This document shows, piece after piece, positions 2,881-57,642 of a stretch of 64,000 nt of DNA. The notes beneath the pieces are model-generated. The model did not search any database. It saw only the letters and a program-made list of their open reading frames with translations, and had not been told where the DNA came from. The stretch is from NCBI GenBank assembly GCA_038087875.1, contig JAXLNO010000618.1:62001-126000 (forward strand). Reading direction: 5' to 3'. This DNA is from Malacoraja senta. Its lineage: Eukaryota. A program made the translations under genes and the position numbers. Each line of letters opens with the position of its first letter. Positions within the stretch are counted from its first letter, which is position 1.

Positions 2881-3049
2881 TATCACAATGTGTAAATAAA
2901 CATCAGAAGTGTGAAGGACAAAGACAATATCAAACCATCCCAAAACCTATTGAAACATGCAAAAGAGAATTAGGGGTGGATTATTTGTCACTTTGAGCCT
3001 GTTTAATCATTCCAAACAATCTCATATTCCAATTCTCTCCCGATAAATT

Positions 3050-8967: not shown

Positions 8968-9067
8968 AGAATGCACAAAATGAGGCCGAGGTTTCTCTGC
9001 AGCAGTTTGCCACTTGGTTTGATGTTCGTTTTCTTTGTTTTCCTGCTTCGACCAGTTTCCACACAGA
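8968..9067 (+). CDS. Leader (signal peptide) exon, [32 protein letters not shown]
   Basis: Acceptor ttatttccaaacag at 8967; ATGs at 8971 and 8980; basic N-region plus hydrophobic core; phase-1 donor a|gtaagt at 9067. Confidence 0.85.
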
Positions 9068-12000
9068 GTAAGTGCTTTCTCTTCGCCGGTCACAATCACC
9101 TTGCATTAATTATCATTGTCCGTGTAAACCCACATCCATTGTCAATCTCGCTTTACTCTCAACATCCCTGAATGTGTTGCTGCCTCATAAATCCACACCA
9201 TCCTTCCTGGACCTCCATTCCACATCCCTGAATGTGTTGCTGCCTCATAAATCCACACCATCCTTCCTGGACCTCCATTCCACATCCCTGTATGTGTTGC
9301 TGCCTCACAAATCCACGCCATCCTTCCTGGACCTCCATTCCACATCCCCGTATGTGTTGCTGCCTCATAAATCCACACCATCCTTGCTGGACCTCCATTC
9401 CACATCCCTGTATGTGTTGCTGCGTCACAAATCCACACCATCCTTCCTGGACCTCCATTCCACATCCCTGAACGTGTTGCAGCCTCACAAGTCCACGCCA
9501 TCCTTGCTGGACCTCCATTTCTGAGCCCATCCCATCAACTCCCTCTCCTTCTCCAGCACCGACACGGTCCTTATCAAAGTCAGAAATGGCCTCCTGTGAG
9601 CTTGTTGCAGAGTTAAACTCTCCCTCCTCATCCCGCTCAGCCTCTGCAGCCTTTGACACGGTTGTCCACACCATCCTTCACCAACATCTCCTCACCACAG
9701 TCCAGGTGGGTGGAACTGCCCTCGACTTATCGATCCAGTCGCAGCCCGAGAACCACGCACAATGTCTTCACTTCACGCTCCCACAAAGTTCCTTCAAGAC
9801 CAGGTGGAGTTCCTCCACTACCCCAACACTACCCCCTATCCCCACCTCCGTCTCCCTCCCTCCCACTCACTCATTTCTCTCATGTGATGAAATATCCCTG
9901 CATCAATCAGGCCAGGTTATTCCACACACACATCTCTTCACAAACCGTGTCTTCCTCGCTGGGGTTTCCAAGGAAGATCACAACTGTCTGGAATTAAATT
10001 CAGTTCAAAATTAATGATTACAGATAAGGGGTGGGTGGGGAAAATGTGTATTAAATATTAATTCTTCATTGTTCGTATTTGCAACAGAAAACAGAAATCG
10101 AATGTATTTCTTGGATAACCGAGGCGGCATTGTGTTAAACGGAACAGACAATTCTGAGAAAGACGCTGTTGTTGTCTGGGAATGGAAACCACACTCAGGG
10201 AAGGAAATCGGAATATTGACGACTTTTAGAAGAACGAGGGACTATTGGAGCGAAGTGAAGGCCGCTGGCGAGAGTATAGTGGACTTGTACCCGGAGATGT
10301 ATGTGAATCCCTATACCCTTGATCTGACAATTGATAAACCCACATTTAAATGGGCGGGAATTTTCACTTTGGCTCAAACAGAACCGAGAAAGCAAATCCT
10401 GAAACAATATGAAATATTTGGGATGAAAGGTGAGTGGGTGCGATAAGGATCAATAATGTTTAATTTATCTCTGTAAATGTTGTCACCTATAATGATGAGA
10501 GATGGCGGGAATTGTGAGACTTCTTCCACCCGGTGAAAAGTTAAACAACTGTGGAAGTGTTTTTGTTCATTGATTCTGTAATGATCAGCAGGGGTGATAA
10601 TAGTTTGATGACTTCACTGGGAACAGCAAATCAATGAATCGACCCGCAGCGAATACCATGGTCTTCTTGCCTGCACACGGTAAGGTGATCGCAGCAAGGT
10701 GGTATGGAACCAATGTCTCCATGCAGTGGCCCCGGGGTGACACTGCTACTTAATGTTACCCTGTGACCAGGTGGATGGAAGTCCATCGCCTGTGGAACAT
10801 GGGCTCTGCCATAGAGTTCACCTCTTGAGAGCAATCAGATACACCTTGAAGGAGTGGAAATAGATGCATTTTCAACAGTTTGTGAATATTTGAAACAGAG
10901 CATGTGTAAATACAACAACACCTGAATGTTGCCGGTTCCACCTGCAGTCACACGGTAAACAGCCGGCATTTCGCTGCGTCAATGTGACCAGCCACGGGTG
11001 TCAGGGGTCTGAGAGCACTTGGGGAGAAGTTGTTCTGACTTTCAGCTACGTGTCAGATTTAAGCCCGGTTATTGGATGAACCATGACATCCGCACTCTTC
11101 TGAAGTCCAGATTCCGGGCATTCAGGTCTGGAGATGCAGAGGTCTACAAGACGTTCAGATACGACCTTGGTAAGGCCATCAAAAGTCCAAAAGGGACTTT
11201 GCTCCAAGCTGGAGGATGAGACAGATGTACGGCAACTGTGGCAGGGCTTGAATGCAATCACCTCATACAAGGCAAAATCAGGAGGCAGCTCAAATGTCAG
11301 CGAAGCATCACTCCCTGACGAGCTCAATGCGTTCTATGCACGCTTTGATAGGGAGAACACCGATGTGCCTTCTCGAGACCCCATTCGCTGTGATGGTATT
11401 TCAGTCTCAGTCACAGAGGCCAACGTCAGGAAATCCTTCAGAGGGGTGAACCCTCGAAAAGCGCCTGGACCTGATGGTATACCTGGTCGTGTTCTAAAAA
11501 CCTGTCTGGACCAACTGGCTGGAGTTTTTACGAACATTTTCAACCTCTCACTTCTGAGGTCTGAGGTTCCCACCAGCTTTAAAAGGGCATCAATTATACC
11601 AGTGCCCAAGAAGAGTAAGGTGACGTGCCTCAATGACTATCGACCTGTGGCACTAACACCTGTGGTGATGAAGTGCTTTGAGAGGTTGATCATGACGCAG
11701 ATCAACTCCTACCTCGACAAAAACCTGGACCCACTGCAGTTCGCTTACCGCCACAACAGATCAACGGTGGATGCGATCTCGCTGGCCCTCCACTCCGCTC
11801 TGGACCACTTGGACAACAAAAACTCATATGTCAGGCTGTTATTCATCGATTACAGCTCAGCATTTAACACAATCATCCCCTCCAAGCTGGTTACCAAACT
11901 CGCAGAACTGGGTCTCTGCGCATCCCTCTGCAATTGGATCCTCGACTTCCTCACTCTCAGACCACAGTCTGTTCGTGTTGGTGGAAATGTGTCAGCCTCA

Positions 12001-15000
12001 ATAACAATCAGCACGGGAGCACCTCAAGGCTGCGTGCTCAGTCCCCTGCTGCACTCACTCTATACTCATGACTGCGTAGCCGGTCACAGTGCGAACTCCA
12101 TCATCAAGTTCGCTGACGACACCGCTGTTGTGGGACGTATCACTGATGGGGATGAGTCAGAATATAGAAGAGAGATCGAGCAACTGTCCATATGGTGCCA
12201 GCACAATAACCTGGCCCTCAACACCAGCAAAACCAAGGAATTGATTGTGGACTTCGGAAGGGGTAGGATATTTCTGAAGATCTCTCCTGGTCCCAGAACA
12301 CTGATGCAATTATAAAGTAAGCACATCAGCGCCTCTACTTCCTGAGAAGATTACGGAGAGTCGGTTTGTCAAGGAGGACTCTCTCGATCTTCTACAGGTG
12401 CACAGTAGAGAGCATGCTGACCGGTTGCATCGTGGCTTGGTTCGGCAACTTGAGCGCACAGGAGCGGAAAAAGCTACAAAAGGTAGTAAACACTGCCCAG
12501 TCCATTTTCGGCTCTGACCTCCCTACCATCGAGGGGATCTATCGCAGTCGCTGCCTCAAAAAGGCTGGCAGCATCATCAAGGACCCACATCATCCTGGCC
12601 ACACACTTATCACTCCGCTGCCATCAGAGGATCCTGAAATCTGCAACATCCAGGTTCAGGAACAGCTGCTTCCCCACAGCCATCAGGCTATTAAAAACAA
12701 CTTCAAACAAACTGTGAACTACAACAGCCTATTGCACTTTATCTGTTTATTTATGTGTGTATATATATTCTACGATACATGGACACACTGATCTGTTCTG
12801 TATTTATGCCTACAATATTCTGTTGTGCTGCAGCAAGCAAGAATGTCATTGTCCCATCTGGGACTTGACTTGTACAAACCACTACTCACTCTGAATCTCA
12901 TTGATCTGTTTTTCACAGTTGAGGCAAGTCCACAGAGGCCTCTGCTGGGCAGTGACGTCACACTCAGCTGCACCATCTCCAGACTCTCAGATACAGTCAG
13001 TCTTCACTGGAGACCCATGGACTCATCCCAGCAGAACAGGAACAACACTGATCAGATCTGCCTGGATAACACGGTCTATCTGATGGTTCAACACGTTACA
13101 GTGGAGGATGGGAAGCTGTATGTGTGTGATGTGCAGGAAAACGGAAACATTGTTTACACAAGTAATGGAGATTTTACTGTATACAAGTGTAAGTGTAAAC
13201 ACCTCCCATTGGATATCAAGTAGACACTTGTATCACGGTGCTTCTTGTAATATTATGTGTGCGCCCTGTGAAGAACTGTGGCAGTGACCAACTGCTCTCC
13301 AGTATAAAATGCTGCAATGATCAGGGAGAAGTTTACAGAAAGTCTCTCTCTCTGTGGAGCAGCTGCCTGCTTGTCTCTGTGTGACAGACACACAGCACAG
13401 GAGGGGGATGTCTTTCTGTAACCATTGTTCAGTAAAGTATTTTGTCAGTTTATCTTGCCATCAATGCTCCAGTAGTGAGACTGAGATACTGATACAGGAC
13501 TCACGTCAAAGTGTCAGATAGAAAGTGTAGTCACCATGACAACCACCAGCACTTGCTGCTCACACTCACACTGGGGGTCCCGGCCCACACATCAGCACTG
13601 AACAACAATCCATCCCCTCTCCCCTCACTGACCCTTCTCTCCAAGTCTGGTGTTGCTTGAAGTGATTCCAGCTGCTGCAGACTCGGGCTTCTCATCAGCA
13701 TTCAGCTGGGAGCAGGACCCGGGAACAGGGAAGGACAGGGAATCAATGGGTGTGAATGGGAGAGGGATGGTGGGAATAATGGGAATGAAGGGACGGGAAG
13801 ACCCGACCCACTTGAAGTGCCAACCTGTCCGGGTCAGTCCCCACGCAGGCATCCTCTGGGCTGCTTCTGTCCGCAGCCTGAACCTGCACCACCTCCTGCA
13901 GACAGACTGACAGAGACATTCACCTCCCAGACCGCTCTCGGGAGTCTCCGGGAGGTTTCATTCCAACCCGGGAGATTCCCGGACAATCCGGGTGTGGGGG
14001 CGAACCTAATGTTGAAATGTAGAGTGGAATATCCAAACTTCACTGCAATTTACTGCCGTACAGGACATTGTATTTTATAAAGATCTGATGAGTTTAGTGC
14101 GGCATTCATGAAAGATGTTACATTTGAAACTTGATCAGCTGAACAAAACACCACGAATGTTTATAAGAATACGGTTGAGAATCTCTGTATGGCACGGTAA
14201 CTGTAATACTGAAAGGAGTTATCCTCTGTCTCTCTGATACAGATTTACAGAGATACAGACTTTACCGCTCCAGCACAGATCACAGTGAACTTCACCTGGT
14301 TTGTTCTGTGAGTGGTAGCTATTCCCGTGCTCAGTGGACCTGGATATCTCATGACCTTCAACAACACAAAGAAGTAGCATCTGCACACCGGTCTCAGCCC
14401 ATCAATGTCAAAGGAACCGACTTCGGGAATCGACTGGTGACCTCAGGGAAACCCTTCGATGGCAAGGATTTCAGTGTGAGGATTGTCCCCGTTTTGTTTC
14501 AAGATGCCGGAGTTTACACATGTTATCTGGAATCATATCGATTTCCCACCATTGATCTAATCACAGTGAAAGGTAGGAGACAGAATGTTGCCACTGAGTT
14601 TACTGATGAACTTATTGTTTAAAATGTAAACAACCTGCTTGTTTCCACAGTCACAGCTGAACCGTCTGATGCAGTGACTGAGGTAGACAACGTTACCCTG
14701 ACCTGCTCTGTGTCTCACGTCACTGGGTCAATGAGACTGGTTTGGATCAATGGCGATGGCAAAAGTGTTGGAGAAAAGACACTGACTGTGGAAGAGAAAT
14801 CACAGAGTCTGGTTATTCAGAAAGCTGAGAGAGGCAGAGGGAACTGGAGATGTGGTTTGTTTCATCAAGACCTGCCCCAGCTTGTTATCCCGTACTATCA
14901 GGAGCCCCGTGGTAAGTGATAAGGGTTTGTTCTTCATACTTAGAGTCATGATTGAGTTTTGATGTCGCTTATTGATCCTGAAATTTGAGTGGAATATTTT

Positions 15001-18000
15001 CTTCCAGTTTGAGTGGTCTAACTGTTATGATCAATGAATTCTCAAATTTGCTCTGTGTGTTTACTATAACAAACAACTTCTTCTTATGTATGGATCCTGT
15101 TATTACACATGTTTATACTGACAACCTTTTGTCTCCATTTCACCCCTCCATTTTGTCATTATCTCAATCCATCTACTCATCACCATTCCCCACCTGTATC
15201 CACCTATCACTCACCATGCTTTGTCTCATGCCTACTTCCCTTCCCCAGTTGTCACTCTCCCATTCCATCAGTCTGAGAATGCATCCTGACATGAAACGTC
15301 ATCAATCCATTCCCTCCACAGATGCTGCCTGACCCATTGAGTTTCTCCGACACTTTGCGTTTGATCAACATTCCACAATCTGCAGTTTCTTGTGTCTCCA
15401 TGGAGACCCACTGGTCAACGTGGACAGATTGCTGCAGAGGGCCTGTTTCCATGCTGTTCCATGATGATGAATTATAACGTACAACTTAGTAAAGATTAAT
15501 TCTCTGCAATATTGCTACTGACAAGGTCAGTGAAAAATTATTGTCCAACATTTACACATTTGTTCTCTTTTCCTACAGGAAGTGGACATTATATGTACTT
15601 TTTCCATCAGGAAGGCAACTTTGTATTGAAAGGACCAGACAGTCCTGGAAATGGCCCCATTGACTTGGAATGGAGGCCACACTCAGGGCAACAAACCACG
15701 AAGCGATTGGCCACTTTCCACAGAGAAGATCAGCAGTGGGACGTACAATGGAGTGATGAGTACAATCAAATACCAGGCATTTCCCAGAGGATGCATGCGG
15801 ACTGGGGTACCCTTAATCTGAGGATCAGGATGCCCACATTCAAACTTGCAGGACTGTTCACCTGGACTCAAACAGAGCCCGCTGGGAAAATCCTGAGACA
15901 GTGGGAACTATTTGGGATCAAAGGTAATAGAGTCATAGTGTCACACAGCACTGAAACAGGCCCTTTGGTCCAATTCATCCATACTGACCAACTACCCATC
16001 TAAACATCCCATTTGCCCTCATTTGGCCCATATCCATTCAACCTTTTTTCCATCTACCTGTTTAAATACCGTTTAAATGCTGTACCTGCATCAAACACTT
16101 CCTCTGCTCGATCTTTCCATAAAGTATGTTTAGGTACCACACTCTTTGTCAAAACTGCCCCTAATATTAAGGGGTATATCAAATCTGCCCCTCTCACCTT
16201 AAACATGTACTAACTAGTTGTTGATTCCCCAACCCTGGACAAAAGACCATGTGCGTTTACTGTAGATATGCCTCTCATGATTTTATTCACTCCCATATAA
16301 TCTCTGTTAAAGACATCCAAGAAATATAATGTCTGAAGAAGGGTCTCAACCTGAAACGTCACCTATCTATGTTCTCTAGAGTTCAAAGGTCTTTTATTGT
16401 CACGTGTACCAATTAAGGGGCAGTGATATTCATATTACCAGACCTGCTGAATTACTCCTGCACTTTATGTCCTTTTATATATTAACCAGCATCTGCAGTT
16501 CTGTGTTTCTACTATACTAAAAACATCCCTACCTGGAAGTGTTGATGTGGGAGACGAGGGGGCGAGGGGGACAGGTGGTCACTACCAGGAAGTGTTGATG
16601 TGGGAGACGAGGGGGCGAGGGGGACAGGTGGTCACTACCAGGAAGTGTTGATGTGGTAAACGAGGGGGTGAGGGGGACAGGTGGTCACTACCAGGAAGTG
16701 TTGATGTGGGAGACGAGGGGGCGAGGGGGACAGGTGGTCACGACCAGGAAGTGTTGATGTGGGAGACGAGGGGGCGAGGGGGACAGGTGGTCACTACCTG
16801 GAAGTGTTGATGTGGGAGACGAGGGGGCGAGGGGGACAGATGGTCACTACCTTCAAGTGTTGATGTGGGAGACGAGGGGGCGAGGGGGACAGATGGTCAC
16901 TACCAGGAAGTGTTGAAGACATCACTGAGCACGGTAGCTCAACATTCAGCCGACTGTCAGTCTGCAGGAAAAAGACAATTCTGCCCACAGTAGTTCAGAA
17001 AGCTGTTGGTGAACTGAACTACATGTGTCTGTTTCCACAGTTGAGGCCGACTCACCGAGGCCAGTGATGGGCAGTGACATCACCCTCAGCTGTACCATCT
17101 CCAGACTCTCAGATACCATCAGTCTTCACTGGAAACCAAGAGGCTCATCTCAGCAGAACAGGAGGAGCAACACTGATCAAATCCATCTGAATAACGCCGT
17201 CTATCTGATGATCCAACATGTTGGAGCAGGAAATCCCAATCTGTACACATGGGAAGTGCAGGAAAATACCTCCATTGTTCTCACTGGAGACACCAATGTC
17301 GAAGTGGATCAGGGTGAGTCCAAAGCTGCCTTGCAGCAGGTATTAAATAGATCTTGATATCAAACTGTTCCACATGTTGTATAGTGAGCACTGACTCCAC
17401 CCGTGGGCTTCCACACTGCAGGATGTGGACATTGCCTTTACCCTGGGACATGGTGTAAATATAAAATGGTGGCACTAAGATTGATGGAGCCACACAGGAG
17501 AACCAAGAGATTCATTTCAGTTCACCTGCATGAATCAAAGAGAATAATATCCAGTGATGGAAATAACATCTAGTTTTCAGTGTATAACAGAACAGGAAAA
17601 TATGAACTAATTCAAGTATAAATGCAGAGGAAATATCAGAATCAGAATCACATTTTATTGGCCACGTAATAATACACAGGGAATTTGACAGTGCTTTGCT
17701 CGCATAAGGTAAAAACACGATATACAACAGACAATTAAAAATAAAACATTATAATTTAAACATGTGAAAATAAAGTACCTGAGTAAAAAGAGGCTACCGA
17801 CTTTTGGCTGTTGAGTAGAGCTACGGCTCGTGGGAAGAAGTTGTTTTTATGTCTGGCTGTGGCTGCTTTGACAATCAGGACTCACCTGCCAGAGGGAAGT
17901 GATTCAAAGAGTTTGTGGCCTGGGTGAGAGGGGTCAGAGATGATCTTACCCGCTCGCTTCCTGGTCCTTGCAGTGTACAGTTCATCAATGGAGGGAATGT

Positions 18001-21000
18001 TGCAGCCAATAACCTTCTCTGCTGATCGGACGATTCGCTGCAGCCTCCAGGTATCGTGCTTGGTGGCTGAGCCAAACCAGACCATGATGGAGAAGGTGAG
18101 GACAGACTCTATGATGGTAGTGTAAAACTGGACCATCATTGCCTGTGGCAGGTTGTGTTTCCTCAGCTGCCGCAGGAAGTACATCCTCTGTTGGGACTTT
18201 TTGACTGTGGAGTCGATGGTGGCCTCCCAATTAAGGTTGCTGGAGATGATGATTCCGAAGAAATTAAATGACTCCACAGTTGTGACTGTGGTGTTGTTGA
18301 AGATGAGTGGGGGAGGGGAGGGGGAGCTCTACAATCAGGAGGGGAGGATTGAGTCTACAATCAATTCCACTGTCTATAGAGCACTGAGCTTCAGGTTGTT
18401 ACGATGTCAACAGGACACCAGCTTTATGATTAGGGTGACTTGGACATCTTGCTGAAGTAAGCATGCAGGTACAGCAGGCAATGGAGAAAGCAAATGGCAT
18501 GTTGGCCTTCATAGCGAGATGATTTGAGTATAGGAGCAAAGAGATCCTACTGCAGTTGTACGGGGCCCTGTTGAGACCACACCTGGAGTATTGTGTGCAG
18601 TTTTGGTCTCCTAGTTTGAGAAAGGACATTCTTGCTATCGAGGGAGTGCAGCATAGGTTCACCAGGTTAATTCCTGGAATGGCGGACGGACATATGATGA
18701 AAGAATGGATCGACTGGGTATATATTCACTGAAATTTAGAAGGATGAGAAGGGATCTTATAGAAACGTATAAAATTATTAAGGGATTGGGCAGGCTAGAT
18801 GCAGGAAAAATGTTCCCCATGTTGGGCGAGTCCAGAACCAGGGGTCCCAGCTGACATCCCAGAGCCGGGGGTTTGTCCCTGTGGAAACTCACAACATTGT
18901 ATCTCGGCGTGTGTGGAAACTAATTCTTTGTTCCCTGTCCCTCTCTTGCAGGTTTACATAACAAGACGTACACAGTTTATCGCTCAGTCACAGATCACAG
19001 TCAACTCGACCTGATTTGTGAAGCTTCTCCTGAGCTCAGTGAAACCAAATGGACTTGGAGATCACCACGTTTCCAGAATCAAGGGAAGGAAATAGCTTCT
19101 TCTCACAGGTCTGGGCCGATACATGTCAACAGGAGCTACTTTGGGAATCGACTGGAAACCATAGAGGGAAATGTGAATGGCAAGAATTTCCATGTGAGGA
19201 TTGTCCCCGTGCAGTTTGCAGATGCCGGAGTTTACACATGTTCCACGGGATCAAATATTTATGTGACCATTGAACTAATCACAGCTACAGGTAGGAGACT
19301 GGATGTTACTACTTTAAAGAATTAAGTTACTGGTGTAGAGTTTCTAATCTGAGTGCAGACTGCAATGTCAGCAGAAATTCCCAAGTTTGAAGAATTATTT
19401 TACCTCCAGAGCTTCCTCTTCAACTTATTTGTATTTTGCTGAACCCAAAATCTGCTCTAAACCAACATTATTGGGAAGCACATCAAATGTTATTTTCATT
19501 TATTTTGCTGAAAACACATTGTTTTATACATAAGAGAGGGAATATGATGAAATGTGATTCACAAAGGTGCAAATGAGCTTCTATCGAAAATATTTAAAAA
19601 TCATTCAACTTCTCTTAATACATTCCCCAAGTTTCTTTGACCCCAAACGACCCATCCTAATTTTTGAAGGCTCACTGGACGCTTAAAACTGAGTGTATTT
19701 TGTGGAATTTATCGATTAATATTTACCTGGATGAGTGTTGTGGCCAAAACTGTGGCCAGAGACAATGATGTGGGCATTGGTTGCTCTTTGTATAATTAGT
19801 TCAAACTGTTGTGAATGATTATGGAAAAGACACTTGGAGAGGTACATGGATGGGAAAGGTGCAGAGGGATATGGGCCCAATGTGGGAACATATTTTAGAT
19901 GGAGCATCTTGGTCCGCATGGATGAGTTGGGCTGAATGGACCGAATTGTTTCATGCTGTGTGACTATGCCTCTAACTCTTGTTGTGTAATATAATTTTCC
20001 ACACTTAGAACGCCAGATACTGGTGTCAAAGTACTGAGAAAAATACAACACAATCCAGACAAAATTCATTGTTTTACGATTTTCTTCTTTCCACAGTCAC
20101 AACTGAACCATCTAGTGCAGTGACTGAGGGAAGAAACATTACCTTGACCTGCTCTGTGTCTCATGTCACTGAGTCAATAAGACTGGTTTGGATCAATGAT
20201 GAAGGCAAAGTTGTAGAGCAGAAAAATCTCATTCAAACAAAGCAGGAGAACAATTCTTTGCAGCTGATTATTGCAATAGCTGATGGAGTAAGAAGTAAAT
20301 GGACATGTGGTTTGTTTCATCAAAGAACAGCCAAGGTTGTCATTCCATATAATCTGCAGGTGAACAGTAAGTTTCTTAGCTTCTGCTCTTCTTTATCTCG
20401 ACACAGAGTTCTTGTCACGTTGCTATTCTTTTTGGATAACTTTTAACATTCCATGTCTTACTGCAAGTAGAGCATAATCATAGACATTTCCTTCAAACCT
20501 CTTGTCCATGCCTATAAGGTCACTTCTATTGTAAGTAGTCCAGGTCTCTGAAGCACATGTGAGCACATGGATCACTACTGCTGGCAGACCACTGACCAAG
20601 ACCTGTGTTGGCCATCTCATTGAAGGTGATCGGGAATTTCATCATCAATGTCTGTCCTTGTTGATAAGTGTCTCCACAGGTATGAATACTGGTCCAGTAG
20701 TATGAACACCAGTGTGTCACTGTGAACCTTTTTGTCAGAGGTCAGTATAGTAAGGTGGGCAGCTTGGTGCAAGATCTTTGCCATAACACCCAAACTGTGC
20801 CACTTAAAGATCACAAACATAGTGAAAATCATCTTACAAATAGTTGTACAAGTTTCTTTCCCCTGTTCTGATGCTGCAAAACATTACAGCGGTTGAAGCA
20901 TCCACAGTAACTTCACCAAAGGCTGCCATGTGAGAACAGAAGATGTGGGGGAGGGAATACTGATGTCTTCACCTTGTCTGACCATGGCGGCTCAGTGGTA

Positions 21001-24000
21001 GGGTTGCTGCCTTACAGCGCCAGGGACCCGGGTTCAATCCTGACTACAGGTGCTGTCTGTATGGAGTTTGTACCTTCATCCCGTGCCCTGTGTGGGTTTT
21101 CTCCAGGATTTCCGGTTTTCTCCCAAATTCCAAAGATGTACAAGTCTGTAAGTTAATAGGCTTGGTTTAATTGTATGTTGTCCCTGGTGTGTGTAGGATA
21201 GTGCTAGTCTGTGGGAATCGCTGGTTGGTGTGGACTCGGCGAGCAGAAGGACCTGTTTCCGCTCTGTATCTCTAAACTAAACTAAACACGCCCATTCCTC
21301 CCAATCCCACCCATCCGTTAATCCCTGCCCTTCATGTGGCCCCAAGCCTCGGTGAAAGACATTTTGTACAATGCTGACATAAGGCAAAGCACTGATCCCT
21401 AACAGAGGAAGATCCTGTCAACACCCAGGCACAAAGAAACAATCTCCACCACACATAGATCAATGAAGAGTCAGTGAAGCACAAAGTGGAAAGTATCAAT
21501 GTCCCAACAGGAACATTTCAATTCCTCACAGATAATCACATCATCCAATCATAGAATTGTGGAATGGTTGTAGCACAGAAGGTGGCCATTTGACCCATCA
21601 TATCCATGCTAACTCTCATCCAGTGCAACTCGCTAATTCTACCCCCTCTCCTTTTGCCATTACATTGCAGCTTTTTAATCACTTTATATTTGTCCAATTA
21701 TCTCTGGAAAGCCACGATAGAACCCAGCTCCCCAACTGATGCAGATAGTACACTTCAGACTCCAACTACCTGCTGCCTAAAAAGATTGTCCTCAAGTCAT
21801 TCTAGCATTTTTTCCCCTTTATTTTAAACCAATACCTTTTTGTGCTCAGCCTTTCCACTGAAGGGAGCATCCTTCCACAATCCATTCTGGTCAGACTGAA
21901 TAAATGATGCATAAATGAACAATGATGCCATTGATGTGATGAAAGAGCATTATTGACTCTTGTCTTCAAACTCTCTCTTCAGTGTGCCATGGTAATAACT
22001 GGACAGAGAACAGCCATAAAAAGAATCTCAATTATACCAACCATGTTTACTGTTTAGTTTAGAGATACAGAGCGGAAACAGGCCCTTCGGCCCACCGGGG
22101 CCACGCCAACCAGCGATCCCCGCATATTAACACTATCCTACACCCACTAGGGACAATTTATACATTTACCAAACCAATTAAAGGGACGGAGATATCAATC
22201 AGTGAGTGAATAGATTAGTTGGTGTGTGGAATTAATGCATGGATCAACCATCTCCAATTTTACACTAACAACACAGGAAGATATGTTCATTAGGATTGCA
22301 ATAATAATGTGTTCAACCTCATTGACATCAGTAAGCAATGGTTACATGCACAGTACAGTTTTAGTACTTGAAGACCAAAGTTAATTTTTGGAGTTGAAAA
22401 TCGGAATGAAAAATCATAATAATAATCAGCAGGACAGATAGCAACTGTGAAAGAGGAACAACTGTGAAAGAGGAACAAAACCAAGGAACTGATTGTGGAC
22501 TTTGGAAGGGGTAGGATGGGGACCCACAGTCCCGTTTATATCAATGGGTTGATGGTGGAAAGGGTCAAGAGCTTCAAATTCCTGGGCGTGCACATCTCTG
22601 AAGATCTCTCCTGGTCCGAGAACACTGATGCTATTATAAAGAAAGCACATCAGCGCCTCTACTTCGTGAGAAGATTACGGAGAGTCGGTTTGTCAAGGAG
22701 GACTCTCTCTAACTTCTACAGGTGCACAGTAGAGAGCATGCTGACCGGTTGCATCGTGGCTTGGTTCGGCAACTTGAGCGCCCAGGAGCGAAAAGGACTA
22801 CAAAAAGATGTGACCACTGCCCAGCCCATCACCGGCTCTGACCTCCCTACCATAGAGGGGATCTATCGCAGTCGCTGCCTCAAAAAGGCTGGCAGCATCA
22901 TCAAGGACCCACATCATCCTGGCCACACACTCATCTCCCCGCTACCTTCAGGTAGAAGGTACAGGAGCCTGAAGACTGCAACGACCAGGTTCAGGAATAG
23001 CTACTTCCCCACAGCCATCAGGCTATGAAACTCAACTCAAACAAAACTCTGAACATTAATAGCCCATAATCAGTTTATTTCCACTTTATCTGTTTTATTT
23101 ATTCATGTGTGTATATATTTATACAATGGTATATGGACACACTGATCTGTTCTGTATTCATGCCGTCTATATTCTGTTGTGCTGAAGCAAAGCAAGAATT
23201 TCATTGTCCTAACTGGGACACACGACAATAAATTCTCTTGAATCTTGAATCTTGAGTCCAGCCATGATCGCATTAAATGGCGGTGCTGGCTCGAGGGGCT
23301 GAATGGCCTACCCCTGCACCTATTGTCTATTGTCAAAGATCCTTTCTTTGAATCTGACAACGTTTTTTTCATCATAAAACATGAACTCACTTCTTTCCCT
23401 TTCCACGGATACTGCTCAAACGGCTGAGTATTTCTAACGTTTACAGTTCTTGTGCTCCTGGTTATAGAGGATTGAAGCTGGAGGGCAATATCCACTCTGT
23501 TGTCAGCAGTGCTCATTCAACCATTGTTCCAGGCTTAGACTATGATAGACATTTGTCCACTGTACAGTGGGAAGTATCACAGCTGAATCAGCTACTTTAT
23601 CAACCATCAGCTCCCATCTCCTGCCTGAGAAATGTCAGCTGATTGTAACCAAGAAATAGAAACTTGTGTGAATGTTTACAGTCTCTAACTGATGGCTACT
23701 GAGGCAAGTTGTGGCTCTCTGATCTTTCTGAGTACGGTCAATTAATCTGGGGGAGAAAAGACACAATGTGCTGGAGTAACTCAACGGGTCAGGCGGAATC
23801 TCTGGAGAACATGGATAGGTGAGGTTTTGGGTCTCGACCCTACTTCAGACTAAAGGGCTGTGACCCGCAATGTCAACTGCCTAACCTGCTGAGTTTCTCC
23901 AACACTTTGTGTCTTTTATTGGTAAACTGTCATCTGCAGTACCTTATGTCTCAGTGAATCTGGATCACAAGTTAAACTCAAGACTTCTGATCTACATTAG

Positions 24001-25120
24001 TCAGTGTGGTTAATGCCTGGTCTTTGGGGGAGCTTTTGAACGATGCCCATTTATTCTACAAATGTGAACTGTGTTTATTATTTTGACAGGGAATCACCCT
24101 TTTATAATCAGATTTGTTGTAATTATCGGAGGTCTGGCTGTTCTCATCATCATTATACTGGCAGTGGAGTGCTGTCAAAGAAAGCGCAAGCCTACAGGTA
24201 AAGTACATGAAGACATCCTTAATGCAGCACAGATTCCCCACATTATCAATCACAATGTTATCTCTGTTACAAGGAGAAAAGAACAATATGTTTTGGATAA
24301 GAAAAGTATCTGTTTGTGCTTATGTTGTTGAGAAATTGATTTCAGACTTTTTGTGTTCAATTAAAGCATTATTTATGCAATGTGGATTGTCTACCTGTCT
24401 ACCTGCGTTGCCAGGAGGAGTCTGCTGTATGATTTCAGGTGCTGTTCTGCAATGATCTGACCACGTGGTGATTGTGTCACCATCCCCTGTGTAAACCATT
24501 ATCAAATAAACATGCCAGAAGTTGAAGTATAGCTAGTGTAGTCATGTAGAAAATATGGTCCTCAATTTGCCCTCAACAAGTTCCTATTTACTGAGGGATG
24601 AATATTGGCCAGGAAACCAGGAGACCAAGGTATCTCCACTGCACTTTGGTGATTCACGTTCCTAAATCTATTGTGTCCCAAGAGGCCAGAAGGGGCCTCA
24701 GTTAAACAAATAATCTTTAATCTGGTGAGGCCAATGCTGCAGCAATCCCACATGGCAACAGAGAGTTTGGCTCAACTGTGTTCAAATTTGGGGTTGTGCC
24801 TGAGGGTTTATTCTGTGTTGTTGAACAAACTGATCAGACGGGTATCGGGCTAGTACAACAGTTCATCAAGGTCACTAACACATGGAATACTCAGTTCTTA
24901 AAGCTTCCCTTATATTTATATAAATCAACATTTTTTTTCCATGAAAAAAATAAACCATTCCAATAACTGATCATTAGAAATATAAAATTACACATTGAAT
25001 ATATTAACTGTATGTACAATTATAAATTCAGTTGCTTCTTTACTTGTCATCTTGACTTGTGAAAACTCTGCAGTGCAAAGATGCATTTGTCCATTCTCCA
25101 GATATTTTCAACTCTGCTAG
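8971..25120 (+). CDS. Spliced gene for a type I membrane IgSF receptor with 8 Ig domains (V-C2-V-C2)x2, CD4/LAG-3/G6F-like family (family call tentative)
   Basis: 11 exons (8971-9067, 10088-10429, 12919-13188, 14243-14572, 14651-14911, 15579-15923, 17041-17313, 18952-19290, 20097-20366, 24090-24197, 25074-25120), all with AG/GT ends and phase-1 junctions, join into one open frame of 2682 nt (893 aa + stop). An unseen small stalk or tail exon cannot be excluded. Confidence 0.8.
9157..9520. repeat. 60-bp minisatellite, about 6 copies, in the leader-D1 intron
   Basis: Unit ccattccacatccctgaatgtgttgctgcctcataaatccacaccatccttcctggacct. Confidence 0.95.
10088..10429 (+). CDS. Exon D1: V-like Ig domain with no cysteines
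   Basis: gcaacag| acceptor and g|gtgagt donor; 342 nt open; VVWEWKPH (C strand), LDLTI (E strand), WAGIFTL (F strand); clearly paralogous to D5. Confidence 0.85.
11040..12872 (+). mobile_element. Rex1/Babar-type non-LTR retrotransposon (disrupted RT) in the D1-D2 intron
   Basis: ORF 11134-12315: [38 protein letters not shown]; C-terminal [12 protein letters not shown] region; internal deletion near 12270. Confidence 0.9.
12919..13188 (+). CDS. Exon D2: C2-type Ig domain
   Basis: tttcacag| acceptor and t|gtaagt donor; DVTLSC...SLHW...KLYVC. Confidence 0.9.
14243..14572 (+). CDS. Exon D3: V-set Ig domain
   Basis: tgatacag| acceptor and g|gtagga donor; LHLVC...QWTW...GNRL...FSVRI...DAGVYTC. 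Confidence 0.92.
14651..14911 (+). CDS. Exon D4: C2-type Ig domain with WxC F-strand
   Basis: ttccacag| acceptor after a 78-nt intron and g|gtaagt donor; NVTLTC...RLVW...GNWRC. Confidence 0.92.
15579..15923 (+). CDS. Exon D5: cysteine-free V-like Ig domain (paralog of D1)
   Basis: tcctacag| acceptor and g|gtaata donor; DLEWRPHSG...LNLRI...[12 protein letters not shown]...WELFGIK matches D1. Confidence 0.85.
16533..16915. repeat. 53-bp G-rich minisatellite, about 7 copies, in the D5-D6 intron
   Basis: Unit caggaagtgttgatgtgggagacgagggggcgagggggacaggtggtcactac. Confidence 0.95.
17041..17313 (+). CDS. Exon D6: C2-type Ig domain (paralog of D2) lacking the F-strand Cys
   Basis: ttccacag| acceptor and g|gtgagt donor; DITLSC...SLHW...NLYTW; about 55/91 identical to D2 by manual alignment. 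Confidence 0.88.
17637..18310 (-). mobile_element. Rex1/Babar-like 3' fragment (second subfamily)
   Basis: ORF 17882-18277: [13 protein letters not shown]...[10 protein letters not shown]...SDPSHPGH; (attctg)n-type tail. Confidence 0.85.
18447..18845 (+). mobile_element. CR1 ORF2 C-terminal fragment
   Basis: [13 protein letters not shown] region. Confidence 0.85.
18952..19290 (+). CDS. Exon D7: V-set Ig domain (paralog of D3); not shown as a full ORF in the supplied track
   Basis: ctcttgcag| acceptor and g|gtagga donor; manual translation is open: [23 protein letters not shown]...KWTW...GNRL...[18 protein letters not shown]...IELITAT. Confidence 0.92.
20097..20366 (+). CDS. Exon D8: C2-type Ig domain with WxC (paralog of D4)
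   Basis: ttccacag| acceptor and a|gtaagt donor; [12 protein letters not shown]...RLVW...SKWTC. Confidence 0.92.
20480..20960 (-). mobile_element. Degenerate RTE/BovB-like LINE remnant
   Basis: Decayed [16 protein letters not shown] and ASETWTTY motifs. Confidence 0.55.
20978..21290 (+). mobile_element. tRNA-derived SINE (V-SINE/HE1-like); related copies at 53350-53645, 62100-62365 and 41930-42130
   Basis: A-box-like ggcggctcagtggt, B box ggttcaatcc, central gagtttg...ctcc...gggttttctcc domain, (ctaaa)n tail. Confidence 0.8.
22484..23240 (+). mobile_element. Rex1/Babar 3' fragment
   Basis: ORF 22495-23028 is the same family as 12200-12870; tgacaataaa tail. Confidence 0.9.
24090..24197 (+). 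CDS. Transmembrane exon ([36 protein letters not shown])
   Basis: ttttgacag| acceptor in matching phase; hydrophobic helix followed by CC and a basic stop-transfer run; g|gtaaag donor. Confidence 0.85.
25074..25120 (+). CDS. Candidate terminal cytoplasmic exon ([15 protein letters not shown])
   Basis: ctctgcag| acceptor with an upstream pyrimidine tract; the phase-1 reading gives CxCP and SxYxxL, then TAG at 25118-25120. Exon choice is inferred. Confidence 0.55.
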
Positions 25121-25899
25121 ATACCTCCACATGTTGGCCTTACCTCATTCATGGTCTCCTGTGACCTTCCCATCCATGTTCTGTCCAGCAATGGCTCTAT
25201 CGTGGAATCCATACCGTAACTCAAATCCATGCTCATCCTGTGCCTCATATTCTCCATCACCATCTTCTTGGGCATCCTGTCCATGTAACACATGATCTAT
25301 CCATGTAATTTGACTTCTGTCACTTATTCCCATCATTGCACCACCATTTTATTCACAATATTTTTCCTGAACTGAATCCAAATTCTTGGATTATCAAATA
25401 AGATTTAAACCTGTGCTTCTGGACTATTAATCTCAAAGAGTCTTGGATTAATATCCAGTTAACCTATGACAATCCAAAAGTACATCAAAATAAGCAAACT
25501 AAATATGTACCCATTAACAGGAGTCAGCACAACACATTTGAAAGTAAGTTGGAGAGAAACACATCACCAATTCTGAATATGGTAATGTTGGGAAAAATTA
25601 ATTACATATTGTGTTTATCATATTTGTGGAAAACGGAGTTAATGGAATCTCTATTGCGTTTTGTTCAATGTGTGAAATTAAATTGTGTAAAATCATGAGG
25701 GGAATAGATAGGGTGAGTGTGCAGAGTCTTTGACCCAGTATAAAGTAATCAAAAACTAGAAGACATAGGTTTAAGTTGAGAGGAACCTGAGTGGCAGCTT
25801 TTTCACTCAGATGATGGTGGTTATATGGAACAAGCTGACAGAGAAGGTCGTTGAGGAAGGAACTATAACTGCATTTAAAAGAACTTAGGTAGGTACATG

Positions 25900-26812
25900 A
25901 ACCACCGGGTGGCGTCGCAATGGCTGCCTCGCCAACAGTCTGTCTCGTCCTTTTCCTTCTTTGATGTTTTTTAGTATGTGTTAAATGGATGTTTTAGTGT
26001 TCTTTAGCTTTATTTTATGTGGGGGGTGGAGGGAGGTTGGGGGAACCTTTTTAAATCTCTTACCTCGACGAAGATGCATTTTTTTCCGTATCGTATCTCC
26101 ATCTGCACTGTGGCCTAACATCGAGGTGCTGGCGGCCTCTTGCTGGGGATTGACTTTGGGAGTTCCAACCGCGGGAGCCTGCAGGACTTAACATCATGGA
26201 GCTGATGGTCCCTGTCGGGGATCGACCTTGGAGCTCCAACCGTGGGAGCCTGCAGGATATAACATCGTGGAGCACGTGGTCCCTTGGTTAGGGATCGACT
26301 ACGGGAGCTCCAACCGTGGGAGCCTGCAGGATATAACATCGTGAAGCACGTGGTCCCTGTCGGGGATCGACTACGGGAGCTCCAACCGTGGGAGCCTGCG
26401 GATTTAGCATCGTGGAGCACGTGGTCCCTTGTTTAGGGATCGACTACGGAAGCTCCAACCGTGGAGCCTGCGGATTTAGCATCGTGAAGCACGTGGTCCC
26501 TTGGTTAGGGATCAACTTCGGGAGCTCCAAGCCGCACGAGCTTCGACCGCCCTGACCTGGGGGCTTCAATCGTCAGCTGTGGGAGCTTCCATCACCCCGA
26601 CTGCGAATGGTTCGACTGCCCCAACCGCGGGAGAATAAAGAGTGAAGAAGATTAGAATTTATCGCCTTCCATCACAGTGAGGAATGTGGAGAATCCACTG
26701 TGGTGGATGTTTATATTAACTTTTCTGTAGTTGTGTGTCTTGTTGCTTTTTCTAGTATGACGATGATAAATTGAGTTTAATTGCACCTTAATTGGTGCAC
26801 ATGACAATAAAA
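25900..26812 (+). repeat. Interspersed SINE-like element with an internal tandem array of about 61 bp (26130-26560)
   Basis: Repeated gggatcgactacgggagctccaaccgtgggagcctgc units; Rex1-type tgacaataaa 3' tail. Confidence 0.55.
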
Positions 26813-26851
26813 TACATTTGAAGCTTTGGAGAAGAAAGGTTAAGGTCATGG

Positions 26852-27078
26852 TGTAGCGGAGCCTGCTGGCGCACGTAGATACCGAACCCGGCGTTGGGAA
26901 GCCACGGTCACGTGACTCGGGAGGGGCTGCTGTTTTCGTGCGGTTTCGTTTTTGCGCCACAGTTGGTTTGCTGACCACCGTTGTGATCAGACGTGTATGC
27001 AGAGACCTGTTTGCTAAGGAGCGAGTGTTCAATAAAAACCGTTCAGAAAACGTAGTCGTCGTTTCTGCATCCGCTAAA
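26852..27078 (+). mobile_element. Solo LTR (Gypsy-like), 227 bp
   Basis: Termini tgtagcgg...ccgctaaa (one mismatch from a perfect inverted repeat); 4-bp TSD atgg on both sides; internal aataaa. Confidence 0.8.
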
Positions 27079-28784
27079 ATGGGTCAATTGCAGGCACATG
27101 GGACTATCTTGGATGGGGCAACTTGGATGGTATAGACTAGTTGAGCCAAAGGACATGGTTCTGTGCTGTATGACTCTATGACTCTTTGACTTTATAAAAG
27201 GTGAAAACAATTTATATTGTGCCCTCTCTCTGAACAGGTTTGGGCAATCAAAGACAGACAGCTCCACCATCAAAAAGAAACACAGAAGGTGAATCTCACC
27301 TTTAAGGCAACCTTGAAGAAATTCAGCAGATGGCAGGTGTAGTGGCCATTTGGCCTGTTTTGCATGTCATTGATGATGGCATGTGCCTTTAAATTTTAGA
27401 CTGCCCGTTGTACTGTGGATGGGATTTATGGCGTGTTTTGGGGCGTGTTTGGAACTTAGATGCTTGCGCAGAAGTCTAGTTTTTAGATTAGTTTGGAGAG
27501 ACGACGGAGAAGGTCAATCCTTCGACCATGTCAATGTTACGGAGACACGAGGAGTTTTGTAATGTTTAAAGTTGCAAGTTGGAATTGAAGGAAGATTGCA
27601 GTAACGAGTCGGAAGAAACTTGGATGTATCTTGCTGTTTACCTTCAACAATAAAGCATTTATTCAACAAAAGACTGTGTGTTGAAGCTTTATGAGTGAAG
27701 AAGCTCTGAAGGTCTCTGAGGAAGCTTGCATGCGTATCGAAGATATTCCCTTATCCATTCTCATCCAAATAGCGGCTAGAGAATTCGTTTCTCGAAAGAT
27801 AAGAAAAATCTGCCGTTACAATAAGTCGAAGGGAACCTCCGGCAGGGGGGTTAAATACTAGTCCCAGAGAGTGGGACAGAAGATTAAATCGAAGGGAACC
27901 TCCGGCAGGGGGGTTAAATACTAGAAAGGGACATTGAGTGTGGTCTTTGACTGTGCTGCAGTCTTTAAAGGTACATCGCTTAACGGTGAACTACTGCAAG
28001 GTCCAGACCTTACCAACTCACTCATTGGAGTTCTCATCAAATTTAGGCAAGAACCGATTGCTTTAATGGCTGACATCAGATCGATGTTTCATCAAGTGAA
28101 AGTAGCTGGTGAACATATTGATTACCTGCGATTCTTATGGTGGCCTGAAGGGGATGTGCAGCAAGATCTTGTTGATTACCGGATGAAAGTACATCTCTTT
28201 GGAGCAGTGTCATCTCCAAGTTGTGCGAACTTCGCTTTAAGGAACACCACAGAGGATAATAAAGATTATTTCCCAGAGGAGGTAATTTCCACTTTGAAAA
28301 ATAATTTCTACGTGGACGATTGCCTAAAATCCATATCTACTGAGCAGAAAGCAATTCAAATGGTAAAACACCTGACCTCTCTCTGCAATAAGGGAGGATT
28401 TGTACTTTCCAAGTGGATCAGCAACAATCGTGTTGTATTGGAAAGCATTCCACCAGATGACAGAGCTGAAGAAACCAAGGAGTTGGATTTAGTTAAAGAC
28501 AATTTGCCAATGGAAAGGGCACTGGGACTGCACTGGTGCATGGAGACGGATGTGTTTAAGTTTAAATTGTCGATTCAGGAGCGACCATGTACAAGAAGGG
28601 ATATCTTTTCTGTGATTGGCTCAGTATACAACCCTTTGGGATTTCTTGCACCATTTACACTGCCAGCCAAGTTAATTTTACAAAACCTTTGTAAGGAAAA
28701 ACTTGGATGGGATGAGAGTATAACTCAAACATCCTCGCACCGTTGGCCAGAATGGTTAACGGACTCCATAAAATGTCAAAGTTT

Positions 28785-56208: not shown

Positions 56209-56282
56209 GTAATCCACAAAATGAGGCCCAGGTTTTTCTGCAGCAGTTTGCCAGCTGGTTTGATGTTTGGTGTCTTTGTTTT
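56209..56282 (+). pseudogene. Truncated paralog of the leader exon (MRPRFFCSSLPAGLMFGVFV...)
   Basis: Acceptor ttatttcccacag and ATG at 56221 match 8968-9067; homology stops where an LTR starts; no Ig exons follow. Confidence 0.8.
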
Positions 56283-57642
56283 TATCAGAACTGAACGAGG
56301 AGGAGGACTCAAATGCAGGCTCAGACACAGGGCAGATCAGTTTCCAGAGTTTAATCGGTCCAAGTCAGTACACAGGTAAGCAAAAACGGAGACAACGGTA
56401 CAATCTAGGAGCATGCAAAAACAGTGGTTGAAGACAGGCACTGGTGGAGATAATAAGGTCAACAGATTTGTAGAGCTGGCACGAGGTGATACAAATTAAC
56501 ATACACAACGAACTGGCAATGAGAACTAAAACACAAAGGGCTTAAATACACAGCCTAAAGGCTCTGTCTCACGGTGTTGCGGTCATCGGCGGCGAAGCGC
56601 GGCTTCGCCTGTAGAGGGGACCGCACGGCAACGGCGAGAGCGCCGAGCCTATGCCACGGGAGCGGCGCACGGGTGCTACACTGGGGCCGAGTGATTTAAA
56701 TACGGCTGGTCCCACGAGCTTGCGGTAAGTAAAAAAAAAGGGCGGGCCGACTGCGATTACGTCATTTTGGATCTGCGGGGCTGTGGCGGCGGCCGTGCTG
56801 ATCGCGGCGCCGTAGCGGTGGCTGTGGCGGCGGCCGTGCCGCACACGTGTCTCACTAGCGGAGGCTGTGGCGGCGGCTATGCTGATCGCGGCGCTGTAGC
56901 GGTGGCTGTCGCGGCGGCCGTGCCGCACACGTGTCTCACTAGCGGCGGCTGTGGCGGCGGCTGTGCTGAGCGCGGCGCTGTAGCGGTGGCTGTGGCGGCG
57001 GCTGTACCGCACACTTGTCTCACTAGCGGCGGCTGTGCTGAGCGCGGCGCTGTAGCGGTGGCTGTGGCAGCGGCCGTGCCGCACACGTGCCTCACTGGCG
57101 GAGGCTGTGGCGGCGGCTGTGATGAGCGCGCCGCTGTAGCGGTGGCTGTGGCGGCGGCCGTGCCGCACACGTGCCTCACTGGCGGAGGCTGTGGCGGTGC
57201 AAGTTCGACGCACGGCGCTCGTGCCACACTGGCGGCGGCCGTGCTGCACTCGTGCCTCACTGGCGGAGGCTGTGCGGTAGGGACATATTTTTGAACAGTG
57301 TTGGTTTTATTTTAGCACCGTGCGGTGTTGGGAACAACGCCGCACGGCCCCGGAATTATGCGTTTGACCGAGTGCGCGGTCTATGGCAGCCCAGGAGCGG
57401 TAGATTCTTCCTGTTTCGCCGCCAATGACCGCAGACTCGTGAGACAGGCGTTTAACAGGGGATAACGAGACACAGGTGAAACACATCAGGGCGGGGCCTA
57501 CAATCACACGAGGGGAAAGGACATGACAGGAAATGGGACCTGAAACGAGAGGAGATGTGAGACACCAAAATAAAACAAGCATGCAACCAATAATATTAAA
57601 AACAATAAGAAACAGAAACTAGATCAAACGTGAGACCTGACA
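56283..57642. mobile_element. Solo LTR-like element with a nested TIR element
   Basis: Termini tatcag.../...ctgaca (TGTCAG-type inverted ends, one mismatch); flanks do not form a TSD. Confidence 0.6.
56559..57452. mobile_element. Non-autonomous PIF/Harbinger-like TIR element with an internal GC-rich 84-bp tandem array
   Basis: Imperfect TIRs of about 38 bp (aggctctgtctcacggtgttgcggtcatcggcggcgaa vs the reverse complement of the right end); TAA on both flanks. Confidence 0.75.

Follow-up and report, generated by a model that had tools for sequence, protein, structure and literature searches.

A doubled, tail-less receptor gene of Malacoraja senta and an unnamed fish receptor family resembling CD4, LAG-3 and G6f-like in predicted shape

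The DNA analysed here (the window) is a stretch of 64,000 nucleotides from Malacoraja senta (assembly GCA_038087875.1, contig JAXLNO010000618.1, positions 62,001 to 126,000), and it carries a gene for a type I membrane protein with eight immunoglobulin (Ig)-like domains, at 8971-27305 on the + strand. The locus belongs to a large, unnamed and ancient multigene family of fish Ig-superfamily (IgSF) receptors. Taken as a whole, the best explanation, which we hold to be probable, is that this is a family of paired receptors shaped like CD4, LAG-3 and G6f-like, and that the present copy is either a young pseudogene or a decoy lacking the tail.

The eight-domain gene and its family

The gene consists of 11 exons with 900 codons. 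The ten exons that encode the leader, the domains D1 to D8 and the transmembrane (TM) helix are all of phase 1, every internal exon is bordered by an AG acceptor and a GT donor, and the stop-free + strand stretches that hold the leader, the eight Ig-like exons and the hydrophobic exon lie within 8.9-24.4 kb. A previous interpretation made without database searches (the sequence-only reading) had proposed an intact spliced frame of leader, eight Ig domains and TM helix, and this is borne out, as all Ig exons lie where it had placed them and in silico joining and translation gives one frame without an internal stop. The product has the plan leader, twice the series cysteine-less V, C-type, V and C2 with WxC, then a TM helix and a tail of 30 residues. 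No cysteine at all is present in D1 and D5. D2 has an ordinary YxC (YVC) and D6 has YTW at this place, and WxC is thus found in one C-type domain per module, namely in D4 (NWRC) and D8 (KWTC), as had been noticed before. The YTW of D6 also occurs in Leucoraja, Amblyraja and Mobula, and the loss of this cysteine is therefore a trait of the family and not a sign of decay. The TM exon is of the inhibitory-lineage type, as in P0028, P0077 and P0064.

The two modules are related domain by domain. D1 and D5 are 42% identical, D2 and D6 64%, D3 and D7 55%, and D4 and D8 57%, with tblastn E values of 2e-20 to 8e-32 and local scores of 190-271 for these cognate pairs as opposed to background scores of at most 60 for non-cognate pairs, so that the proposed paralogy of the four pairs holds. 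The intron bases that had been pointed out as matching between the modules, gtaggagac after D3 and D7 and ccacag/tcaca before D4 and D8 (the slash marks the exon border), are real, and those after D3 and D7 are part of a conserved read-through segment. Whereas the doubled architecture is confirmed, a recent origin by duplication of a four-exon cassette is not. In a tree of four-domain modules, the first and the second module of the window fall into different clades with support values of 95 and 97 in the Shimodaira-Hasegawa-like approximate likelihood ratio test (SH-aLRT), and each of the two clades holds sharks as well as rays, which means that the module types parted before sharks and rays did. 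As, in addition, the order of an A module followed by a B module is common to Mobula and Leucoraja, and in part to a sawshark protein, the eight-domain layout is, judged by these sequence comparisons, not the product of a recent cassette duplication.

The short intron between D3 and D4 can be read through in a conserved frame that, with its stop, is also present in the Leucoraja locus described below (L001). The read-through peptide forms the C-terminal end of the database proteins P0014 (Rhinoraja) and P0103 (the basking shark Cetorhinus), and one RNA contig keeps this intron. Retention of the intron suggests a putative soluble three-domain isoform. The intron after D7 (19291-19325) opens like this read-through, with GRRLDVTT.

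How widespread is the family? A profile of D1/D5 was run against 1.84 billion representative proteins, where it matched 35 clusters; for 20 of them names were looked up, and 19 are unnamed proteins of sharks, rays, skates, chimaera, sturgeons, eels and Albula. The remaining one, a Triplophysa protein (P0026), was rejected as a member, its match being a weak and partial one to a SLAM-like V domain. With a skate member as query, 89 chondrichthyan proteins were found, many of which carry consecutive LOC numbers on one chromosome and therefore represent tandem clusters. With family profiles, members were also found in paddlefish, bichir, Anguilla and Conger, and a profile of the bony-fish members matched only eels, Conger, bichir and sturgeons. 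The family thus comprises more than 150 “uncharacterized” proteins of sharks, rays, chimaera, bichir, sturgeons and eels, to which NCBI has automatically given inconsistent names (VCAM1-like, CD276 homolog, CEACAM5-like). The sequence-only reading had regarded it as a family of cartilaginous fish, which is too narrow in view of the members from bichir, sturgeon and paddlefish, eels and Albula. Its notion of a multigene cluster is correct insofar as an expanding family exists, but the 64-kb window contains only this one receptor gene and no other gene, accompanied by a leader-like relic and by a second copy, 96% identical, of the upstream region.

Eight-domain relatives occur in Mobula (58-63% identity along the entire protein) and in Leucoraja (74-82%, with P0151 at 74%). 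The family had been supposed to be undescribed, and no published description was indeed found, including by LOC identifiers, in the mainly non-subscription literature searched, but NCBI has already predicted the eight-domain form as such in both Mobula and Leucoraja, under the label “uncharacterized protein”. For genome annotation it is relevant that these genes are split or cut short in NCBI models. The one eight-domain gene at 5179-40691 of L001 (Leucoraja erinacea, CM054017.1), which has a full ITIM-like tail with tyrosine motifs, has for example been split into the two models P0061 and P0077. Public models of family genes are often fragmented or fused, and the 1710-residue Scyliorhinus protein P0001 with its several modules may be such a case.

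Three tail types exist among the family members. The first is long and carries YxN, EYMSV, (I/L)HYxS(I/L)xF and V(I/V)YxxI motifs, the second is short and combined with a lysine in the membrane anchor, and the third ends in YxN motifs; in relatives, YxN takes the forms HLYSN, HLYGN, AVYSN and IYEN. All three types are present in sturgeon (Acipenser P0131, P0132/P0133 and P0031). The YxN-ended tail (..IYDNVENIYENC) is common to sturgeon, paddlefish and bichir (Polypterus P0134), and could be the missing link to the teleost G6f-like. The mixture of tail types, together with the tandem clusters, is what one sees, by analogy, in families of paired receptors with inhibitory and activating members. 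KIR/LILR, SIRP, Siglec/CD33, CEACAM and the fish NITR/LITR likewise form tandem multigene clusters in which long tails with immunoreceptor tyrosine-based inhibitory motifs (ITIMs) occur beside short tails with a basic anchor, and such families also have tail-less or soluble variants and a fast-evolving distal domain. When the Ig exons of the window are compared with L001, the ratio of nonsynonymous to synonymous substitution rates (dN/dS) is 0.70 overall, 1.30 for D1, and 0.40-0.50 for D2, D5 and D6. Domain types and domain order differ from those of the paired families, and the likeness is one of working, with no homology implied.

Could the family be one of the fish families that have already been described, i.e. 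the skate MDIRs or the teleost DICPs? The skate MDIRs reportedly form a modular multigene system with four Ig-domain subfamilies and with lysine-anchored and ITIM-bearing forms, which would speak for this reading. The outline of the MDIR description is confirmed in PMC3031540. However, neither an MDIR nor a DICP name occurs in more than 150 named matches, although skate sequences that are 70-80% alike would have surfaced there. Moreover, CD300, pIgR and TREM, to which MDIR domains have been likened, do not appear among the top structural matches found for the module as a whole. An identity with MDIRs or DICPs is therefore very improbable.

Loss of the signalling tail

The sequence-only reading had let the gene end at 25120, with a last exon (25062-25120, + strand) that contributes a CxCP/SxYxxL tail. 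The actual end is 27305, as the last base of the TM exon is 24197 and the next exon begins at 27238. The RNA evidence consists of short assembled Logan contigs from public runs, which are 91-99% alike to the window and represent close relatives or paralogues; their first alignment to the window was dominated by repeats and gave hints only, in that some of them end at exon borders, and D8 is almost absent from them. In a 227-base contig of run X5, 24100-24193 is joined directly to 27234-27336, and since 4 of 94 and 9 of 103 bases differ from the window, its source is a close paralogue or a sister species. The same splice from the TM exon to the first cytoplasmic exon (CY1) is found in two related skate loci, L001 of Leucoraja and L002 of Rhinoraja. 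It is thus clear that the junction between the TM exon and 27238 is a splice in family use. An earlier version of the gene model, in which the TM exon was read through to 24331 (922 codons), has been superseded by the tails of relatives, the RNA contig and the L001 mRNA.

With 25062-25120 as last exon, the protein could be imagined as a CD4-type co-receptor, whose CxCP tail binds an Lck-like kinase, whose SxYxxL is inhibitory, and whose ectodomain binds class II molecules of the major histocompatibility complex (MHC). An acceptor (ctgcag/TG) and an in-phase open reading frame (ORF) with stop are indeed present there, Cx(C/H) is the Lck motif used by CD4 tails, and the ectodomain is predicted to be CD4-like in shape. 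Nevertheless, such a co-receptor is the most improbable of all alternatives. The RNA depth at 25062-25120 is zero in four runs, the X5 contig passes from the TM exon to 27238, and the annotated mRNAs of both relatives (Leucoraja and Rhinoraja) skip the segment. Its Rhinoraja counterpart reads QRCICPLSRCFQLW-stop, with a cysteine that replaces the tyrosine, and shows the same nucleotide identity of ~90% as the flanking intron, with changes that are mostly amino-acid-changing. No CxC tail occurs in any family member examined; the tails of the relatives have YxN and ITIM-like motifs or go along with a lysine anchor, and the idea of a CD4-like signalling has to be given up. The segment was rejected as an exon and is a chance ORF within the TM-CY1 intron. 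Another candidate in this intron, a window-specific insertion at 24461-26059, was rejected as well, as Rhinoraja has this segment and the difference is a deletion in Leucoraja.

In the window, the CY1 codon at 27303-27305 is TAA, whereas relatives encode at precisely this place the tyrosine of HLY(S/G)N, a YxN motif. The CY1 exons of P0077 (Leucoraja) and P0064 (Rhinoraja) encode HLYGN and RLYAN, and the X5 contig has a T at 27305, which results in a TAT codon. The product of the window gene therefore ends with ...KPTGLGNQRQTAPPSKRNTEGESHL after 900 residues, and its tail is devoid of tyrosine. L001 contains the whole eight-domain gene with every exon in the same order as in the window, followed by further tail exons: after CY1 with HLYGN come CY2 with EYMSV, CY3 with IHYGSISF and a last tail exon with VIYAQI. 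L002 has tail exons as in L001, and both loci align to each other for ~9 kb past CY1, whereas the window aligns to both only up to 27338/27339. Neither the EYMSV, IHYGSISF and VIYAQI exons nor any other ITIM-like motif were found up to 64000 by tblastn and motif scan. With the TAA, the end of homology and the missing tail exons, this copy has a nonsense codon plus a 3' truncation or rearrangement. Natural short-tailed variants exist in the family, e.g. P0073.

It could be argued that the gene nevertheless encodes a full and functional inhibitory receptor, the TAA being an allele or an assembly error and the tyrosine exons lying beyond the window or being misassembled. The leader, the eight Ig exons and the TM exon are intact and have good splice sites, the transcript of a close relative has TAT at the TAA codon, and the repeat-rich downstream region complicates assembly. 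Yet, apart from the abrupt end of the homology at 27339, where L001 and L002 go on for another 9 kb, the next 36 kb are without any tail exon found, and the upstream region of the next gene begins already by ~58.7 kb. A full receptor is for these reasons improbable.

Likeness to CD4, LAG-3 and G6f-like

CD4 and LAG-3 count as a family of two genes to which the teleost G6f-like is distantly related, and the origin of the group is obscure. G6f-like has reportedly been likened to CD4 and LAG-3. A relation of the present locus to CD4 and LAG-3 had been proposed by the sequence-only reading, and this proposal survives in part: structure searches rank CD4, LAG-3 and g6f-like at the top, but a kinship at the sequence level is not detected. 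In the window, Pfam assigns V-set to D3 and D7, generic Ig to D2, D4, D6 and D8, and nothing to D1 and D5. In profile searches against the PDB, CD4 D1 appears only with E values of 0.05-0.2, for D2/D6, and D1/D5 match nothing, while a protein-language-model atlas returned generic ALCAM- and CEACAM-like neighbours only. As the orthologues of CD4 and LAG-3 themselves are less than 20% identical and lose cysteine pairs, a missing sequence link is not surprising.

For the comparison of structures, an AlphaFold2 (AF2) model was made of the Rhinoraja protein P0075, which is 79% identical to D1-D4, from a 50-row alignment; its predicted local distance difference test score (pLDDT) is 84.3 and its predicted template modelling score (pTM) 0.80. 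In this model, the strands 135-150 and 340-354 run continuously across both V-to-C junctions, and the four domains align one by one to those of CD4 and LAG-3. Foldseek against the PDB ranks LAG-3 first (4e-19) and CD4 second and third, and against Swiss-Prot models the top 18 entries are all LAG-3 (which is again first, at 1e-21) or CD4 (down to 3e-16), followed by IGSF2 and Ly-9. VIA-align gives Z values of 15-17 for four-domain CD4 and of 13.7 for rat CD4 D3D4, with a deviation of 2.5 Å over 170 of 177 residues. In an ESM Atlas shape search, two “g6f-like” clusters are on top and CD4 clusters are among the top six. D1 alone is a generic V domain, and its nearest matches by root-mean-square deviation are G6f and the D3 of rodent CD4, which is free of cysteine.

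These similarities could also be convergent or generic, in which case there would be no special kinship with CD4, LAG-3 and G6f-like, and the family would belong to other IgSF receptors with V-C repeats, such as CD2/SLAM (e.g. Ly-9), CEACAM-like or nectin-like proteins. The sequence signal to CD4 and LAG-3 is indeed zero, a cysteine-less N-terminal V domain is typical of CD2/SLAM as well, and in Foldseek Ly-9 and IGSF2/3/8 follow closely behind, at 4e-16 as compared with 3e-16 for the last CD4. The NCBI auto-names CEACAM5-like, VCAM1-like and CD276 homolog likewise point away from CD4. Ly-9 (SLAMF3) in particular shares the V-C2-V-C2 order, which there arose by V-C2 doubling, has a disulfide-less V domain and comes next after CD4 and LAG-3 in Foldseek. 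However, all 18 CD4 and LAG-3 entries outrank every other Swiss-Prot protein, and the ESM Atlas search, which is led by g6f-like and CD4 clusters, is independent of this result. In a wide VIA-align search, CD4 domain pairs superpose with 2.5-3.8 Å, whereas the two-domain pairs of the SLAM-family members NTB-A and CD48 superpose poorly, with 9 Å. WxC in D4 and D8 and continuous V-to-C strands are rare traits of the CD4/LAG-3 group, the sole SLAM-like sequence match (the Triplophysa protein) is weak and partial, and the immunoreceptor tyrosine-based switch motif TxYxxV/I of the SLAM family was seen in only one of the tails examined (TEYMSV in P0023). A placement among such other receptors is therefore unlikely, and the evidence from the modelled structure, which is moderate, makes it rather likely that the four-domain module is truly related to the group of CD4, LAG-3 and G6f-like.

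Several observations weigh against the explanation as a whole. The CD4-specific Pfam families PF05790 and PF09191 are absent from 12 members at E values up to 10, with none in the domains of the window, and PDB profile searches for each domain pair led to generic Ig domains only (MXRA8, PD-L1, antibody V, PD-1, titin). No named relative, be it CD4, LAG-3, G6f-like, MDIR or DICP, is among the matches of the D1 profile and the family profiles. The structure is a prediction for P0075, a relative, in place of the protein encoded by the window; the Z of CD4 D3D4 is equalled by single V domains of MPZ, nectin and JAML, and the global template modelling (TM) scores are below 0.5. WxC is present only in D4 and D8, and D2 and D6 lack it across the family alignment, whereas CD4 and LAG-3 have it in both C domains. 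The overall dN/dS of 0.70 would fit a fast-evolving immune receptor and an early decay alike and cannot decide between them, and among the short assembled RNA contigs none identical to this copy was seen.

What, then, is shared with each member of the group, and what is not? With CD4, the family shares the V-C2-V-C2 module, WxC in the C2 domain next to the membrane, the continuous V-C2 strand that is predicted to make the module a rigid rod, and the occurrence of a cysteine-less V domain, and CD4 is the best structural match by Z. The differences are the absence of detectable sequence similarity, the lack of WxC in D2/D6, the tails, and the fact that the module is doubled to eight domains in a multigene family, whereas CD4 is a single gene. 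With LAG-3, the plan of the ectodomain is common, and the inhibitory function of LAG-3 may have a counterpart in the long-tailed family members. The inhibitory motif of LAG-3 is (F/Y)xxL(D/E) as opposed to YxN and I/VxYxxI/L in the family, and LAG-3 is single-copy, adjoins CD4 and has no sequence-level link to the family. [quoted passage not shown]

In case of G6fL and G6F, the common features are four Ig-like domains (here per module) and a TM anchor. A YxN tail motif as in G6fL is present in relatives of the window gene, and the bichir and sturgeon members end in it, but in the window its tyrosine codon is TAA. G6fL is a thrombocyte collagen receptor whose ITAM (immunoreceptor tyrosine-based activation motif) is divided between two exons. 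In contrast, YxxL/I-x6-12-YxxL/I is absent from the ray-finned-fish members scanned, and none was noticed by eye in the chondrichthyan tails. Judged by name only, there is no g6f protein among those that the exhaustive D1 search and both family profiles matched. Tentatively, and with somewhat less than even confidence, the family may be regarded as a third ancient branch of the CD4/LAG-3 lineage, or as one allied to G6f-like, that would never have turned into a single T-cell co-receptor but would have diversified into paired receptors (inhibitory, activating and decoy) built from one, two or more four-domain modules. Cartilaginous and early ray-finned fishes would have retained it, and most teleosts and tetrapods would have lost it or have reduced it to G6f-like/G6F. 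If it is such a third branch, its ligands could be MHC class II-like, and the family would bear on the origin of the axis between CD4/LAG-3 and MHC class II.

Proposed working, features and surroundings of the gene

By comparison with other receptors that have ITIM and YxN motifs, the tyrosines of the long-tailed members would become phosphorylated and recruit Grb2 and SHP-type phosphatases, whereas the lysine-anchored, short-tailed members would, like other receptors with a basic anchor, pair with ITAM adaptors for signalling. Other members are short-tailed or secreted. The distal cysteine-less V domain, which evolves fastest, is likely the ligand-binding end, and rigid V-C2 rods with a hinge in between would set the reach, so that the eight-domain form may extend about twice as far from the membrane. 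As the tyrosine codon of YxN is a TAA and the ITIM-like exons are gone, the present copy of the inhibitory lineage cannot signal. If expressed, it would bind its ligand without any signal and thus act as a decoy or competitor, and otherwise it would be a young pseudogene. MHC class II and collagen may be considered as ligands, but these are guesses from CD4/LAG-3 and from G6fL.

New is a large unnamed family, ranging from chimaera to eels, with a rod-like V-C2 build and WxC, organized as paired receptors and stackable to at least eight domains. If the kinship with the CD4/LAG-3/G6f-like group is true, the family would serve as an outgroup when the ancestral CD4/LAG-3/G6F molecule is reconstructed, cartilaginous fish would gain a candidate innate receptor system in a role similar to that of KIR/LILR, and a set of natural tail-less variants would be available for study.

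Table 1. Features of the receptor gene and its surroundings in the window (slash, exon border)
Feature	Position	Strand	Evidence or remark
Exon 1, ATG and hydrophobic leader (32 codons + 1 base)	8971..9067	+	donor A/gtaagt; 87.5% identical to the leader of Leucoraja L001
D1, V-type Ig domain without cysteine, module A	10088..10429	+	AF2 V-type sandwich, pLDDT 76; no Pfam match
D2, C-type Ig, C...W...YxC	12919..13188	+	generic Ig Pfam; 64% identical to D6
D3, V-set Ig, C...WTW...DAGVYTC	14243..14572	+	Pfam V-set 2.8e-6; 55% identical to D7
D3-D4 intron, 78 bases, conserved read-through frame GRRQNV..F.DEL..stop	14573..14650	+	comparison with relatives
D4, C2-type Ig with WxC (NWRC)	14651..14911	+	Pfam generic Ig; pair with D8
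D5, cysteine-less V-type, module B	15579..15923	+	42% identical to D1; one RNA-run contig ends exactly at 15923
D6, C-type Ig, second cysteine replaced (YTW)	17041..17313	+	same YTW in relatives
D7, V-set Ig	18952..19290	+	Pfam V-set 1.3e-6
D8, C2-type Ig with WxC (KWTC)	20097..20366	+	Pfam generic Ig; pair with D4
TM exon and basic stop-transfer stretch CCQRKRKPT	24090..24197	+	donor ACAG/gtaaag; RNA contig joins TM exon to 27238
CY1, first cytoplasmic exon, TAA at 27303-27305	27238..27341	+	acceptor aacag/GT, in phase; 72-75% identical to CY1 of P0077 and P0064
End of collinear homology with related skate loci	27339..27340		alignment to L001 and L002
Leader-like relic of another family gene (probable)	56212..56286	+	76% identical to leader over 25 codons, E 1.5e-9
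Second copy (~96% identical) of the gene's upstream region 2754-7556	58689..64000	+	self-BLAST

Downstream of the gene, the leader-like segment at 56212-56286 is probably a relic of another family gene; no Ig exons were found behind it, and it is closer to the leader of the Leucoraja protein P0151. The ~5 kb direct repeat 2754-7556/58689-64000, whose copies lie some 56 kb apart, looks like a young segmental duplication, and its second copy presumably lies upstream of the next paralogue.

The introns are filled with retroelement fragments and tandem repeats. Tandem arrays are present in intron 1 (9072-9521, ~60-base units), in the D5-D6 intron (16526-16916, ~53-base units) and in the TM-CY1 intron (26060-26722, ~72-base units), where the array is expanded relative to Leucoraja; further arrays at 48431-49609 and 50806-53127, with 26-base and 34-base units, belong to a GC-rich, strongly skewed block at 48-53 kb. 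Retroelement fragments with reverse transcriptase lie in introns and downstream of the gene, at 11104-12790 (+), 17882-18277 (-), 22468-23025 (+) and 28412-32560. The retrieved flanks of L001 and L002 show the receptor gene only. Some repeats of the window are ~95% identical to copies at the Leucoraja locus (window 35478-37582 corresponds to L001 48086-50192), which is more than the identity of the gene's own exons and hints that the species of the window stands very near to Leucoraja and that the window gene and the L001 gene may be paralogous.

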